From assembly GCA_002269645.1 (NCBI GenBank), contig NIVC01001896.1, forward strand, positions 80,239-144,238: 64,000 nucleotides of DNA, given 5' to 3'. Shown here one piece after another: positions 41,001 to 59,000 of this stretch. Position 1 is the first letter of the stretch, and every line of letters begins with the position of its first letter. A program made the translations under genes and the position numbers. The stretch comes from Macrostomum lignano. Its lineage: Eukaryota. The notes under the pieces were generated by a model that worked only from the letters and a program-made list of their open reading frames with translations, was not told the origin of the DNA and did not search any database.

Positions 41001-44000
41001 CCTCGTGCGACGGCTGCGTAATGATGAGGTGAGTGATCCACGAGCTGACCTGAAATCAGACAGCGGAAACAGTTGGATTCTCAGAGATACTGTGCGACGC
41101 AATATTGAAAACTGAAGATTTCCAACGCCTTTGTTAGCATAAAAGTAGGCCGTCTGCAGTGCCACAATGTTTACGACTCAATATGAGCATGTTTCTACAA
41201 TAGGACACCCTCTATTGCAGGGCTCGGCAAACTCTGACCCGAAGGCCCCGACATGCGACTGGCGAAGCCTCTCTATCCGGCCCTCGGGTTCTTTGAAGCT
41301 TCGCGATAGGAATTCGGCCTGCTCAAGGTTTGTTCTCACAGCTCTCATCTCTCTAATACTCGCGATCTCTTCTCTTTTTCTCTCATCTCCTCTTTTCTCC
41401 TCTCTTCTCCTCTCCTCTCCTCTCCTCTCCTCTCCTCTCCTCTCCTCTCCTCTCCTCTCATCTCCTCTCCTCTCCTATCTCCTATCTCTAAGTCTCTATT
41501 TTCTCTGACCCTTTCTTATCTCCCCTTTTCTGAACCGCAGTCGCAGGCATTTAGATTCTCTATTTGGCCCTTAAGGTAAAGAGTTGCCGAATTTATTTTT
41601 ATTACTTGTCAATGCATGCTATACGTTTACAAAATCATCAAAACCGTATTTATGGCCTGGCCGGGACACTGTCACAATAGGCTACCAACGTGATATTAAA
41701 AAAACCTTCGATCAATTTTAACAAATTCAATAAATTCCTTCAATTCTCACAAAGAACTGACTGCGACCGTATTTTGCTCAAAATTGGTCCCGAGCCGTGT
41801 CTAGCACGTAATATGCTGTTCAGATTTTTTGAGAATTTCGCTTCTCCACCTACGATCGTATCTTGCCAAACAATTTCTTGGAAATGGAACAGCTGATCTG
41901 CCTCGGCCCCATTAGTTTCTTTTGAGTGTCACTTCTTCCATAGCTCCAGCGTTCCTTGCCCGAAAAATGTACGACTAACGTCGGATTTTCAGCTTTTCAC
42001 TTCCTCGATAAGTTAATGAAGAATCAGATCTTAAGATTTTTTTTCCTAAAAGAACTAAAAATTTCAGCAAAATTGGACTGCTTGCCTCTCTCAGGCGGAC
42101 AATCAGATCCTTCACAGTCTTCTCGCCAGGGCAACCAGCGTAGCCCAGCTTGGCGAGGTCAAAGGTCACATTGCGCAAGTAGGCCTGCGGCGGCACAGTT
42201 AGAAACAGGCCGTGCTCGCTGTCAGTGAGAATGATGGCCACCTCTTCGGGAAAGTGGATCAGAGTCTGCAGCTCCTCCAGCTCGTTGGAGTGCACAATTC
42301 CGGCCTCGATATCGCAGCGGAGCATCACGTTTCGACGATGAAGGTCTGTGTGGAGTGAAGCACTTGAATGATGAGCTTACAGGTAGACTTGCAGGTTATG
42401 GCAGAAAATTGCGATGATCGCACAGGTAAGCAATGATCTTACAGGTAATCGATGATCTTACAGGTAATCGATGATCTTACAGGTAATCGATGATCTTACA
42501 GGTAAGCAATGATCTTACAGGTAATCGATGATCTTACAGGTAATCGATGATCTTACAGGTAATCGATGATCTTACAGGTAATCAATGATCTTACAGGTAA
42601 TCGATGATCTTACAGGTAATCAATGATCTTACAGGTAATCGATGATCTTACAGGTAAGCAATGATCTGACAGGTAAGCAATGATCTTACAGGTAAGCAAT
42701 GATCTGACAGGTAATCAATGATCTTACAGGTAAGCAATGATCTGACAGGTAAGCAATGATCTTACAGGTAAGCAATGATCTTACAGGTAATCAATGATCT
42801 TACAGGTAAGCAATGATCTGACAGGTAAGAAAAATCAAACAAGAACTGCTGCTCACCAAACTCAAGGCTATTCCGCCGGACCATGATACCGTCGCACTCC
42901 AGGACCTCCCACAGAGCCAGCGACAGTGACCGCAGCACGTCCTCGCTTGAGCAGACCAGATTCCACGGCTTGCAGCTCTGGAAGTCCAGCTCCACGCAGT
43001 TAATGGGAGAATTTCCCAGGTGCCAATGTCGCAGCTCGGAAACAGGTTGAGATCGGATTAGGGCCTTGCTCTTGCTGTCCAGCAGCACAATCTTCTCCTC
43101 CGAAATGCCCAACAGACGGCCTTGCTTTCGCTGTAAGTTGCCTCTCTGGATCTCTTTCACCTGCGTAATTTGTGTAGGTGTAGGAACCTGATTTAACACT
43201 CATCTTGTTTAGGTATATACGAGTAGAGTGGTGACCTCAAGGGACTTTACTGGGAGAATGGCGACCTCAAAGGGACTTTCCTGGTAGAATGTTGACCTCA
43301 TGTGACTTTATGAGGACATTAAAACCTTCAGGGACGCACCGTAGCCAACTGAACTTCAAAGAAATCTTACCTGATAAATCTTGCAGCCGTAGCTGGGCAA
43401 CTTTTTGCACAACTTGACGTACATCTGCTTCAACTTCAACTCGTTATCGTAGAACGGGGTGTGCCACAGCTTGTTGTGCTTTTCCTGCGACAAAAAAGTG
43501 TTGTAAAATTTACATACGAGTATTTGCGTTGCTTATACGAGCGTACATAAGCGGTGTCTAGATGACGGTATCAAATGCTGTGCTATGGTATCGATGATGT
43601 ACTCAAGGTACTACTAGGTACCTGTACAAGATACAGTAAAGGTATATATCGTGTAGTGCAAGAAGGCACTACCTAGATACCTGAACTAGATACCTGAACT
43701 AGACAAATAAATGTACTAGACACCTGTACTATAAATACCTGTACTAAAGACCTGTACTATACGCCTGTACTAGACACCTTTACTAGACACCTGCACTAGA
43801 CACCTGTACTTGATACCTGTACAAGACACCTGTACTAGACACCTGTACCAGATACCTGTACTAAACACCTGTACTAGACACCTGTACCAGATACCTGTAC
43901 TAGACATCTGTACTAGACATCTGTACTAGACACCTGTACTAGACACCTGTACTTGATACCTGTACTAGACACCTGTACCAGATACCTGTATTAGACAACT

Positions 44001-56000: not shown

Positions 56001-59000
56001 CTGTCCGTCTCCCTCTCGCCCACTCTCCGTCTCCCTCTCCGTCTCCCTCTCCCTCCCACTCTCCGTCTCCCTCTCGGCCACTCTCCATCTCCCTCTCCGT
56101 CTCCCTCTCCCTTTCGCTCTCCGTCTCCCTCTCCCTCTCCCTCTTGGCCACTCTCTATCTCCCTCTCCGTCTCCCTCTTGGCCACTCTCCATCTCCCTCT
56201 CCGTCTCCCTCTCCCTTTCGCTCTCCGTCTCCCTCTCCCTCTCCCTGTCCGTCTCCCTCTCTGTCTCCCTGTCCGTCTCCCTCTCCCTCCCACTCTCCGT
56301 CTCTCTCTCCGTCTTCCTGTCCGTCTCCCTCTCGGCCACTCTCCGACTCCCTCTCCGTCTCCCTGTCCGTCTCCCTCTTGGCCACTCTCTATCTCCCTCT
56401 CCGTCTCCCTCTTGGCCACTCTCCATCTCCCTCTCCGTCTCCCTCTCCCTTTCGCTCTCCGTCTCCGTCTCCCTCTTCCTCTCCCTCTCCGTCGCCGTCT
56501 TTATCTCCTACTCTCTCTCTCTCTGTCTCCCTCCCCATCTATAATACATCTCCCTCCACCTTTCCCTCTCCCCATTCTCCCTCAAACTTCTCATTCCTTC
56601 TCTATCCATTGTTACAGCTACTTAAAAAATCGGTAGCCAAGAACTGGCACAATTTCTCGTTTGTTCAGAGTAGCTTGAGACCGGCTTCCACAATTCCCAA
56701 CCTAAACTATCTGTCCATCATTCCACTGGCGTGAAATCCGATACAGTTAAAATTTCAACAACTGCAAAACCCGCAAGTTTAAAAGTTTATAAAAACATGA
56801 AATTGGCTTTGCCGAAAATCTGTGCAGAATAATTCTCAACTAGGAGCTATGCGCGATGGAGATTGGGGCGAATTCGAGAGGAGCTGGGCGCGAGGGATTA
56901 AGTGAAATTCCCGACATTTCCCTCTGGCCTACGTCCTCATCTCCGCTCCCCCCAGCTCCTCATCTGTCAGCCAGACTCAACTCAAGTTAATCAGCGAGAT
57001 AAGCAGGCGGCCAGACAATTGCGGTCAGGCAAACCAGACTGATAGAAGCTGGGATGAGGAAGGCCGGGGAGGCTGGCCTGTGATGGGGAAAATAAGGAGA
57101 GAGAAATTTACAGATCTGTCTGCTTTTGACGCAACGAAAATGGGAAAGACGATTGGGAGGGGATAGGATAGAAGCAGGAGATCAGTGCGCTCCATGATGT
57201 TCAGCCCTGCTCTGTTTTATTATAGAAGTAATGATAGAGTATTGAATTGTTTGATAGATTTATTGAATGAACGAATCGTTTTATCGATTTTTTTTATTGA
57301 TTTAGTTAGGCTTATTGATCTATCGATTTATCGATTTATCGATTTTTTTGGCTTATTGATTTATCGATGTTTTGATTTAACGGTTTATAGATTGATTGAT
57401 TTGTAGATATATGAGTTTATCGATTTATTGATCTATTGATTTACTGATTGAATTAAAGCTTCGAAAGCAACTCACTTCAGTCAGCATTAGGACGATTCCT
57501 TCCAGAGCCGTAGCTCTCACGCAGCCGTCCTCGATTTGGTAGAGCGACGAACCCAGCGCCATCTGCTCGATGAAGAAGTCTTCCGAACTGATCGAACTCT
57601 GGCACGGGAATCGCTGAGGATTCCACAGGTGGCCGAACACTGTAAGGAGAGTTTGAGATTTTTGAGTCCTTTGTTGTTTTGTCTTCAAGATGGTCTCAGT
57701 CAGCCCAAAATCAGCTCATCCACTTATACCTTGCTGATTGAACAGGTCGAAGCGGCCGCCGAGGCAGTGGAACTGACCCAAATGGACCAGCATCCTCGTG
57801 GCCAGAAATTTCACGTACGGCGCGTACTTTGTAGTGTGGTTGGTGTAGTACCACTCGTCCGAGGGCAGCAGCAGCTGCAGCAAGTTGTCTGTGATGAGCA
57901 GATCCAGGAGCGACTCGTGAAACGATGGGTCCAAGGTGATGCAGCAGAGAGCCTGGAGCAGCAGGCAAAGCAGATGCTGCGGGGTGGCAGTGTTTAATGG
58001 GTGAGGTTGTGTTACATAGTATATGCACGAATGTGAGAGCACAGAGTTCATGTGATGGGGCCAGGAGAGTTGAAATTCAATAATCTGGGATCGCAAAGTC
58101 TGGGATGTTCTGGAATCTGGAAAGCGGGATTAGTAAAATCGGGATCAAGGTGATGGGAATCAAGGAAATCGGCATCAGGGAAATAGGGATCATGGAAGGG
58201 CTGGATCAGAAAAAAGGGGATCAGGAAAATCGAGATCAGGGAAATCGGGATCAAGGAAATCGGGATCAAGAGAATCGGGATCAAGGAAGGGCGGCTGGAT
58301 CAGAGAAATGGGGATCAGGAAAATCGAGGTCAGGGAAATCGGAATCAAGGAAATGGGAATCAGGGAAATGGGGATCAGGGAAATAGGGATCAGAGAAATG
58401 CATGGGAATCAAGGAAATGGGGATAAAAATGGGAATCAGGGAAATGGGAATCAAGGAAGGCTGGATCAGAGAAAAATCAGGAAAATCGAGATCAAAGAAA
58501 TCGGGATCAGGGAAATGGGATCAAGGAAATCGGGATCAGGGAAATCGGGATCAGGGAAATTGGAATCAGGGAAATTGGGATCAAGGAAATCGGGATCAGG
58601 GAAATCGGGATCAGATAAATTGGGATCAGGGAAATTGGGTTCAGGGAAATCGAGATCAAAGAAATGGGGATCGGAGAAACGGGATCAGGAAAATCGGGAT
58701 CAAGGGAATCGGGATCACGGAAATCTGGACCAGGGAAATAGGATCAGGGAAATCGGGATTAGGAAATTTGGATCAAGGAAAGCTGGATCAAGGAAATCGG
58801 GATCAGGGAAATCGGGATCAAGGAAATCGGAACGGGGACCGCATCCACCAGAAGCAGAAGCCCCTCACCGGGTCATAGTTCGGGTCGAGAGTGTCCACCA
58901 GTTTTCTCAGGTGGCCCTCGGACACCAGACGTGCCTGCATGAAGGGGCTGTGGCACATGACCACCAGCAGCCTCGCGGCCAAGATCTGATTGCAGTGCAC

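Follow-up and report, generated by a model that had tools for sequence, protein, structure and literature searches.

The window analysed here comprises 64,000 nucleotides (nt) of the flatworm Macrostomum lignano (GenBank assembly GCA_002269645.1, contig NIVC01001896.1, positions 80,239 to 144,238 of the forward strand), and all coordinates below are counted from its first base. Its minus strand very probably carries, as one gene, most of the M. lignano ortholog of a long form of phospholipase C-epsilon (PLC-epsilon), in which a predicted talin-type F2-F3 half-FERM module is placed between the REM and CDC25 (RasGEF) domains, ahead of the phospholipase C (PLC) core and the RA domains. This gene adds a member to a widespread long-form PLC-epsilon and, with respect to the enzyme as the literature describes it, represents a new variant. 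For the explanation as a whole, with gene architecture and mechanism blended, a probability of about 0.7 was estimated.

Exon chain and domain order

The window DNA is intron-rich. A single large gene was followed on the minus strand from past base 62113 down to approximately 30577, and its upstream end extends past base 64000. For assembly of the exon chain, splice-site tables and M. lignano protein fragments were used as guides. Ten exons between 57639 and ~39644 were joined into a frame of 1144 amino acids (aa) with zero stops (Table 1). All acceptors were AG with a pyrimidine tract and the donors GT throughout, with the sole exception of a consensus GC donor (GCAAGC) at 42086; the intron downstream of the first CDC25 exon is of the GC-AG type. 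At this position the M. lignano UniProt model P0002 picks a nearby GT instead, and the conserved junction between VRLRE and VSSWITHLI is lost. A first-pass annotation, made from the sequence alone, had proposed in-frame splicing of FERM-like exons into the CDC25 domain, which the stop-free chain bears out. The peptides that it quoted were all recovered on the minus strand where it had placed them, and its end points 57639, 42857 and 42086 proved to be genuine exon boundaries when checked against the splice-site tables.

Parts of the chain are represented in M. lignano database models. A0A1I8HPE4 (P0001, 163 aa, named 'FERM domain-containing protein' in UniProt) was 100% identical over 45713-45621; two further P0001 exon matches reached 93% and 98%, with mismatches confined to the ends of the high-scoring segment pairs (HSPs), where intron sequence had been translated. 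P0002 bridges the F3 exon to the CDC25 exon. The models P0008 and P0009, which belong to an M. lignano paralog (50-84% identical), bridge the ARM-like region via REM and a mini-exon to F2. These two models represent a second M. lignano locus for the ARM-REM-F2 region, with the mini-exon present in P0008 and skipped in P0009. The species thus possesses two or more long PLC-epsilon-like genes or homeologs.

For comparison with complete proteins, tblastn was used. From 59099 to 30577 the window was collinear, with no rearrangement, with residues 783-3409 of the tick protein P0191 (3505 aa), in the order ARM-like, F2, F3, CDC25, PH, EF, X, Y, C2, RA1-RA2. Collinearity was likewise found with five further orthologs, among them starfish, adelgid, acanthocephalan and acorn-worm proteins. 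Further upstream, 62113-61931 and 59693-59529 matched ortholog residues ~570-700 (blastp/tblastn, Bradybaena P0222 and Asterias P0112; ~500-630 for the exon 62113-61931 by itself), so that the first ~500 aa, which hold ankyrin repeats in the orthologs, fall outside the window. The orthologs are 3089-3844 aa long, a span that includes the chain length of about 3470 aa estimated in the first-pass annotation.

Pfam recovered the enzymatic domains at the expected places. The spliced CDC25 exons matched RasGEF (E=6e-15, 56 bits, cut-off 23.1); at the conserved WNxGNFN motif this CDC25 has diverged and reads FRLGNFS. The GTGAGT donor at 39644 joins the chain, with the frame kept, to a Gln-rich linker, and from there the PH exon is reached. 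The open reading frame (ORF) 32439-34382 matched PI-PLC-X (E=6e-61, 204.7 bits), PI-PLC-Y (E=2e-31, 108.8 bits) and EF-hand_like, and the X and Y boxes have their catalytic histidines (SSHNTYL and YHGMTLTS in the translation). C2 (27.6 bits) and RA (46 bits, one stretch) followed, and RasGEF, X, Y, C2 and RA were all above their curated cut-offs. Residues 3167-3409 of the tick protein, aligned to the 30577-31386 exon, carry two RA stretches.

The predicted REM domain of the window is split by an Ala/Gln/Ser/Pro low-complexity insert of ~450 aa, and the last REM helices come after the insert, directly before F2. In the first-pass annotation this stretch had been placed behind the REM; alignment with the orthologs moves it inside. 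The N-terminal and C-terminal parts of the window REM align with the unbroken REM of Capsaspora, Oscarella, Nematostella and Asterias, and in AlphaFold2 (AF2) models the insert was disordered and the flanking helices ordered. A profile built from the family REM (A6) matched the REM of SOS1/SOS2 at E=2e-4, and Pfam RasGEF_N was found in four of the eight aligned relatives (best E=9e-13; Capsaspora 43.6 bits, cut-off 28.3). The window ARM-like pieces gave no match in Pfam. SOS1 and SOS2 have a REM and a CDC25, like the predicted pair of the window gene, and both the REM profile and Foldseek find them. In SOS, however, REM and CDC25 are direct neighbours and are preceded by lipid-binding domains (histone, DH, PH), whereas in the window gene the half-FERM stands between REM and CDC25. 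Membrane-binding domains regulate the exchange factor in SOS.

The F2-F3 module and its possible role

A rough splice of the F2-F3 stretch matched Pfam FERM_M (E=8e-9, 36.3 bits, cut-off 23.8), and its C-terminal part gave weak Pfam matches to PTB/IRS and KRIT1-FERM_C. Homologues of the stretch were found at E down to 1e-144. Because FERM_M passes its cut-off and the homologues reach this level, chance can be excluded as a source of the match. In a PDB-wide search with a five-sequence F2F3 profile, talin F2-F3 ranked top (E=2e-9), followed by kindlin (E~0.04) and KRIT1 (0.3).

For structural comparison, the module was modelled with AF2 alone and as part of a REM-to-CDC25 chain. In the model of the module alone, F3 was predicted as seven strands and a helix with a predicted local distance difference test score (pLDDT) of ~95. 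Foldseek placed talin first for this model, with a template modelling (TM) score of only 0.34 over the whole model; against talin F3 alone the TM score was 0.75-0.77 with a root-mean-square deviation of 2.5-3.2 Å. The REM-to-CDC25 model (28 relatives in the alignment) had pLDDT values of 82-93 for F2, 87-97 for F3 and 86-97 for CDC25. Here, Foldseek returned talin F2-F3 crystal structures first (E=6e-9, ~245 columns, TM 0.65-0.74) and also recovered SOS over the REM-CDC25 part.

The stretch from REM to F2 was inspected for an F1 lobe, both in the window and in its orthologs; none was found, and AF2 predicted no strands there. From the last REM helix to F2 helix 1 there are ~25 residues (the 24-residue mini-exon), likewise in the orthologs; in Capsaspora, residue 1291 is the last of RasGEF_N and residue 1344 the first of FERM_M. 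This spacing leaves no room for F1. The module was therefore taken as a half-FERM and not filed as a canonical FERM domain; by its modelled fold it most resembles talin F2-F3. Of the FERM-like domain that the first-pass annotation had put between REM and CDC25, F2 and F3 thus stand by Pfam, AF2 and Foldseek, and F1 does not. The fold check by structure prediction and profile that it had suggested did find a FERM fold for these two lobes. In bilaterians the F2 loop carries a variable insert of 60-150 aa.

KRIT1/CCM1 also combines ankyrin repeats with a FERM-type module and is a Rap-pathway protein (a Rap1 effector). It differs in having a full F1-F2-F3, in binding Rap1 through F1 and in lacking exchange-factor and PLC domains. 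Its similarity is clearly below that of talin, and the matches were weak (Pfam KRIT1 FERM_C and Ank_KRIT1, PDB profile E=0.3, Foldseek E~2e-6).

To assess surface positions, talin was aligned to 21 members of the module family, ranging from Capsaspora to bilaterians. The equivalents of talin K295, Y298, R328 and W359 were invariant (21/21) and that of K316 was kept in 19 of the 21. Talin positions 272, 277, 278, 324 and 325 were basic in 15-18 of the sequences, with the basic 324/325 pair present in 18. In talin, these positions are solvent-exposed ligand or membrane sites that form the F2/F3 membrane patches and part of the peptide groove. Talin is the best match by profile and by fold, with K295, Y298, K316, R328 and W359 in common and basic residues at patch positions. 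Unlike the talin head, the window module has no F0, F1, rod or conserved R358 and bears a long F2-loop insert, and it sits in a RasGEF/PLC enzyme, whereas talin is an integrin-actin linker.

Since the talin patch and groove positions are conserved, the module is proposed to dock the exchange-factor half on phosphoinositide-rich membrane. The basic patch (272, 277 and 278 in F2; 316, 322, 324 and 325 in F3) would lay this half flat on a membrane rich in phosphatidylinositol 4,5-bisphosphate or phosphatidylinositol 4-phosphate. Docking would set CDC25 beside lipid-anchored Rap/Ras and the PLC core beside its substrate. The PTB-like groove with the invariant Trp at the talin W359 position may take a receptor tail or an internal peptide. 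Because the lipid on which the module would sit is also the substrate of the enzyme, tethering could be self-limiting, and Rap-GTP produced by CDC25 would feed forward through RA2. The membrane or cytoskeletal targeting suggested in the first-pass annotation is likewise an inference. That the F2-F3 pair works like a talin head is a tentative view, held at somewhat less than even odds.

Several observations weigh against the reading of gene and mechanism given here. The equivalent of talin R358, a residue required for integrin binding, was not conserved among the 21 sequences, and the M. lignano protein lacks a basic residue at several positions of the patch (272, a gap; 274, E; 277, N; 322, N). 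For both reasons an integrin-type specificity has probably not been kept. With F1 missing, the module fails the full FERM definition of a three-lobed cloverleaf. When modelled on its own, the F2 lobe is predicted by AF2 with moderate confidence and is loosely packed. The window's own REM gave no match to Pfam RasGEF_N, and the REM was therefore established via the family profile. Finally, the exon junctions are predicted or follow automatically built M. lignano models, and one of these, P0002, shows clear mis-splicing at the conserved junction.

Two other roles of the module were weighed. The F2-F3 pair could be mainly an internal clamp, with F3 binding its own chain (for example the REM insert, the CDC25 face or RA), so that exchange factor or lipase would stay autoinhibited until a signal from the membrane or from a GTPase sets it free. 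The model for this is talin, in which F3 is masked by the rod domain R9; the talin-like fold, the invariant Trp of the peptide groove and the position of the module exactly between REM and CDC25 would fit, since the REM-CDC25 contact controls activity in SOS-type exchange factors. Mammalian PLC-epsilon is itself described as autoinhibited, with activity modulated by its N-terminal regions (PMC12501065). In the AF2 model, however, the overall predicted TM score was 0.45 and no specific inter-domain contact was supported, and the clamp as the main role is considered unlikely. Clamp and membrane binding are mutually compatible.

Alternatively, F2-F3 could be a structural relic, a rigid spacer between REM and CDC25 that has lost lipid and peptide binding and is kept to fix the distance between the two halves. 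Growth of the F2 loop into a variable insert of 60-150 aa in bilaterians, the non-basic patch positions in M. lignano and the unconserved R358 are in line with such a spacer, as is the apparent lack of the module in vertebrates (PMC12501065). Against it, residues of the surface and not of the core alone are kept from Capsaspora to bilaterians, among them K316 (19/21), R328 and W359 (21/21 each) and the 324/325 pair (18/21), which makes a mere spacer improbable.

Distribution and origin of the architecture

For the distribution of the module, 1.84 billion representative proteins were scanned with HMMER using the F2F3 profile. The scan gave 472 matches at E ≤ 1e-3 and 41 at E ≤ 1e-30. Long matches, named PLC-epsilon by their sources or left uncharacterised, came from arthropods (the arachnids Rhipicephalus and Parasteatoda and the insect Adelges, an aphid relative), nematodes (Trichinella, Mesorhabditis, Auanema and Steinernema), the acanthocephalan Pomphorhynchus, the gastropod Bradybaena and the deuterostomes Saccoglossus and Asterias; Adelges, Trichinella, Steinernema and Bradybaena were placed by profile match and name only. 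Six of the seven long bilaterian proteins scanned with Pfam had the order [Ank]-FERM_M-RasGEF-EF-X-Y-C2-RA. In the seventh, from Pomphorhynchus, FERM_M and RA fell short of E ≤ 0.01 and catalase domains followed C2. FERM_M was found in nine of ten long relatives scanned and was over the cut-off in eight, with Auanema just under (22.2 bits). The survey of invertebrate PLC-epsilon for a FERM domain that the first-pass annotation had called for thus returned FERM_M ahead of RasGEF in multiple phyla. Two proteins from metagenome or sequencing-run assemblies, P0137 (1529 aa) and P0167 (895 aa), each carry two tandem F2F3-like modules related to this module family.

Outside Bilateria the cassette was found without the PLC part. 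Nematostella LOC5521422, the ORF of a complete Oscarella transcript and Capsaspora CAOG_03360 have the order Ank-RasGEF_N-FERM_M-(PTB-like)-RasGEF with no PLC domains, and their ARM-like, REM and F2F3 regions align with those of the window. They share the order of ankyrin, ARM-like, REM, F2-F3 and CDC25 with the long form, and from REM to F3 the alignment runs residue by residue. In contrast to it, they end after CDC25, lack PLC core and RA, have a short F2 loop and no REM insert, and score far more strongly for RasGEF. On these alignments, REM-F2F3-CDC25 is a cassette that predates animals. The simplest reading would be that, on the way to bilaterians, a PLC core was joined by fusion to an older half-FERM exchange factor. 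The first-pass annotation had called the form possibly ancestral; this is strengthened by the module in PLC-epsilon of arthropods, nematodes, molluscs, acanthocephalans, flatworms and two deuterostomes and by the cassette alone in Nematostella, Oscarella and Capsaspora.

The one-gene order of REM, FERM-like module, CDC25, PLC core and RA, also claimed early on, agrees with the in-frame splicing, with the collinearity to single orthologous proteins and with Pfam on the orthologs. Two adjacent genes, a stand-alone Ank-REM-F2F3-CDC25 exchange factor and a downstream PLC whose single chain is a reading artefact, could be imagined from the stand-alone proteins outside Bilateria and the fragmentary M. 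lignano database models (163-461 aa), but this is very improbable: every named and scanned bilaterian ortholog is a single protein across both halves (RefSeq: ticks, spider, starfish, acorn worm), the window is collinear with single orthologs without a gap, the strong donor at 39644 connects to the exons of linker and PH with the frame preserved, and the window CDC25, at 56 bits, is weak like that of PLC-epsilon (62-98), whereas the stand-alone proteins reach 187-202 bits.

Joined with the proposed mechanism, the origin would read as follows. A pre-metazoan Ank-ARM-like-REM-F2F3-CDC25 Rap/Ras exchange factor, still stand-alone in Capsaspora, sponges and cnidarians, would have been fused to a PLC core and RA domains to give PLC-epsilon, with the half-FERM serving as a phosphoinositide-sensing tether, and both the family and this origin would be undescribed. 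As a conjunction this is plausible, with the odds leaning slightly against it.

Mammalian PLCE1 has CDC25, PH, EF hands, X-Y, C2, RA1 and RA2 in the identical order, and the window is collinear with RefSeq PLC-epsilon-1 proteins. The difference lies upstream: in rat PLC-epsilon the ~500 N-terminal residues are reported to lack both known homologues and a predicted structure (PMC12501065, PMC13022664), as against more than 1300 residues (ankyrin, ARM-like, REM and talin-like F2-F3) before CDC25 in the window gene and its invertebrate orthologs. In a 2025 cryo-electron microscopy study, AlphaFold gave no structure for this rat segment, and only residues 510-780 (CDC25) were ordered (PMC12501065). 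Full activity and regulation by G-beta-gamma both depend on the mammalian N-terminus (reviews 2025-2026). Among the best 150 of the 472 F2F3 profile matches (down to E~4e-11) there was no protein of ~2300 aa, and a word-indexed homolog search with a Saccoglossus F2F3+CDC25 seed returned insects and a brittle star only, and no vertebrate PLCE1.

In vertebrates, all parts that precede CDC25 seem to have been lost. For the loss in vertebrates that the first-pass annotation had suggested, the featureless rat N-terminus and the lack of a ~2300-aa protein in the best 150 matches speak in favour; the evidence is weaker than for the ancestral state. As a lead only, the human PLCE1 N-terminus was compared with F2F3 profiles. 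Its 'MVYSGDSFCRKD...AA...FPDN' resembles F2 helix 1 but scored no better than 2000 shuffles against a 21-sequence profile, and it was rejected as evidence of a vertebrate relic. FPEEVASIL lies at 531 in this sequence, which is consistent with the rat numbering (PMC12501065).

In the papers that could be searched, no description was found of FERM, REM or ankyrin in PLC-epsilon, or of a FERM-containing RasGEF. A 2011 survey lists a choanoflagellate 'PLCE1' ortholog 'with important domain rearrangements', the domains being unnamed (PMC3141262). UniProt and RefSeq already label many PLC-epsilon relatives or fragments as FERM, B41 or Band 4.1 domain-containing. The first-pass annotation had anticipated that wide annotation would lower the novelty; such labels are indeed widespread, and novelty is reduced because automatic annotation already tags PLC-epsilon relatives in this way.

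Other features of the window and significance

The features of the gene and the repeats in its introns are listed in Table 1. Boundaries 3' of the PH exon are HSP or ORF limits; the 5' end of the 58869..59693 exon and the internal boundary of 38132..39251 are approximate.

Table 1. Predicted exons and domains of the long-form PLC-epsilon gene, and repeats in its introns (window coordinates).
Feature	Position	Strand	Basis or location
Upstream helical exon	61931..62113	-	blastp/tblastn to Bradybaena P0222, Asterias P0112
Helical ARM-like region and Gly/His-rich low-complexity stretch	58869..59693	-	tblastn: tick P0191 aa 783-859, P0222 aa 647-702; donor 58869 phase 0
Second ARM-like exon (…LVHLGQF…FNQQ)	57730..57976	-	tblastn 53% identity to P0191 aa 872-939, 84% to paralog P0008; splice phases compatible
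First REM (RasGEF_N-like) exon	57476..57639	-	AG acceptor, GTGAGT donor; aligns with RasGEF_N of Capsaspora, Nematostella, Oscarella orthologs
Large exon: rest of REM N-part, ~450 aa insert, REM C-terminal helices (…WSYLKSN)	52520..54115	-	open frame, REM profile, AF2
24-codon mini-exon, start of F2 helix 1	52363..52434	-	tblastn, splice sites, AF2 helix 13-31
F2 helices 1-2 and start of F2 loop	50554..50763	-	Pfam FERM_M, ortholog alignment, AF2 pLDDT 82-93
F2 loop and helix 3	45621..45722	-	100% identical to P0001; aligns with talin LPKEY
Last F2 helices	43371..43484	-	splice sites, ortholog alignment; talin K295 and Y298 equivalents invariant
F3 lobe (PTB/PH-like), seven strands and C-terminal helix	42857..43160	-	AF2, Foldseek; talin R328 and W359 equivalents invariant
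First CDC25 (RasGEF) exon, ends at GC-AG intron	42086..42345	-	junction search; P0002 joins F3 to exon
Second CDC25 exon (…VGLK)	40904..41049	-	tblastn, junction search
Third CDC25 exon	39644..40120	-	Pfam RasGEF; GTGAGT donor 39644 in frame to 39251
Gln-rich linker exon (39251-~38867) and first PH exon (38356-38132)	38132..39251	-	in-frame junctions; tblastn Asterias aa 1965-2036
PH C-terminal and EF1/2 exons (36381-36118, 35201-35061)	35061..36381	-	HSPs, tblastn to P0191, P0112, P0084
PI-PLC-X, PI-PLC-Y and EF-hand_like frame	32439..34382	-	Pfam; SSHNTYL and YHGMTLTS in translation
C2 exons	31783..32314	-	Pfam C2, tblastn
RA1 and RA2, in ORF 30358-31413	30577..31386	-	Pfam RA; tblastn P0191 aa 3167-3409
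(AGGAG)n	44637-45540		intron
(ACAG)n	50942-51408		intron
63-bp unit x7.4	50062-50528		intron
CT-rich 14/21-bp units	48001-49315		intron
12-bp units	55387-56500, 63047-63927		intron

Nearly all introns of the PLC-epsilon gene (42414-63927) hold long micro- or minisatellites, which give rise to extended false ORFs in every frame. On either side of the exon at 58869-~59700 lie arrays of the 15-bp satellite GGAAATCGGGATCAG in opposite orientation (58119-58830 and 59817-60375), with arms of 170 nt that are 89% complementary. As these inverted arms could pair in the pre-mRNA, looping, skipping or back-splicing of the exon is possible.

Downstream of the PLC-epsilon gene, the minus strand carries an alpha-2-macroglobulin/TEP-like gene at 5393-12756 (Pfam MG2, A2M_BRD, A2M, TED). 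At its expected GCGEQ thioester site KPVGSAESVLFNM was read by eye, and the protein may lack the thioester. A non-LTR (long terminal repeat) retrotransposon fragment at 366-2148, also on the minus strand, runs off the window start and consists of a PHD-finger ORF and an AP-endonuclease ('endonuclease-reverse transcriptase') ORF in different frames.

For PLC-epsilon, the window gene and its relatives suggest that CDC25 was originally accompanied in the invertebrate enzyme by REM and a talin-like module of a presumed lipid- or peptide-binding type. This gives a testable picture of the original targeting and regulation of the exchange-factor half, and of the parts that were replaced in vertebrates. 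It would also define a class of RasGEF, pre-metazoan and so far undescribed, in which a half-FERM is set between REM and CDC25, and bring talin-type modules into Rap signalling in a setting new for them. The long form is present in tractable invertebrates (nematodes, flatworms) and, through its evolution and structure, offers a way to approach the PLC-epsilon N-terminus, which is so far unexplained.

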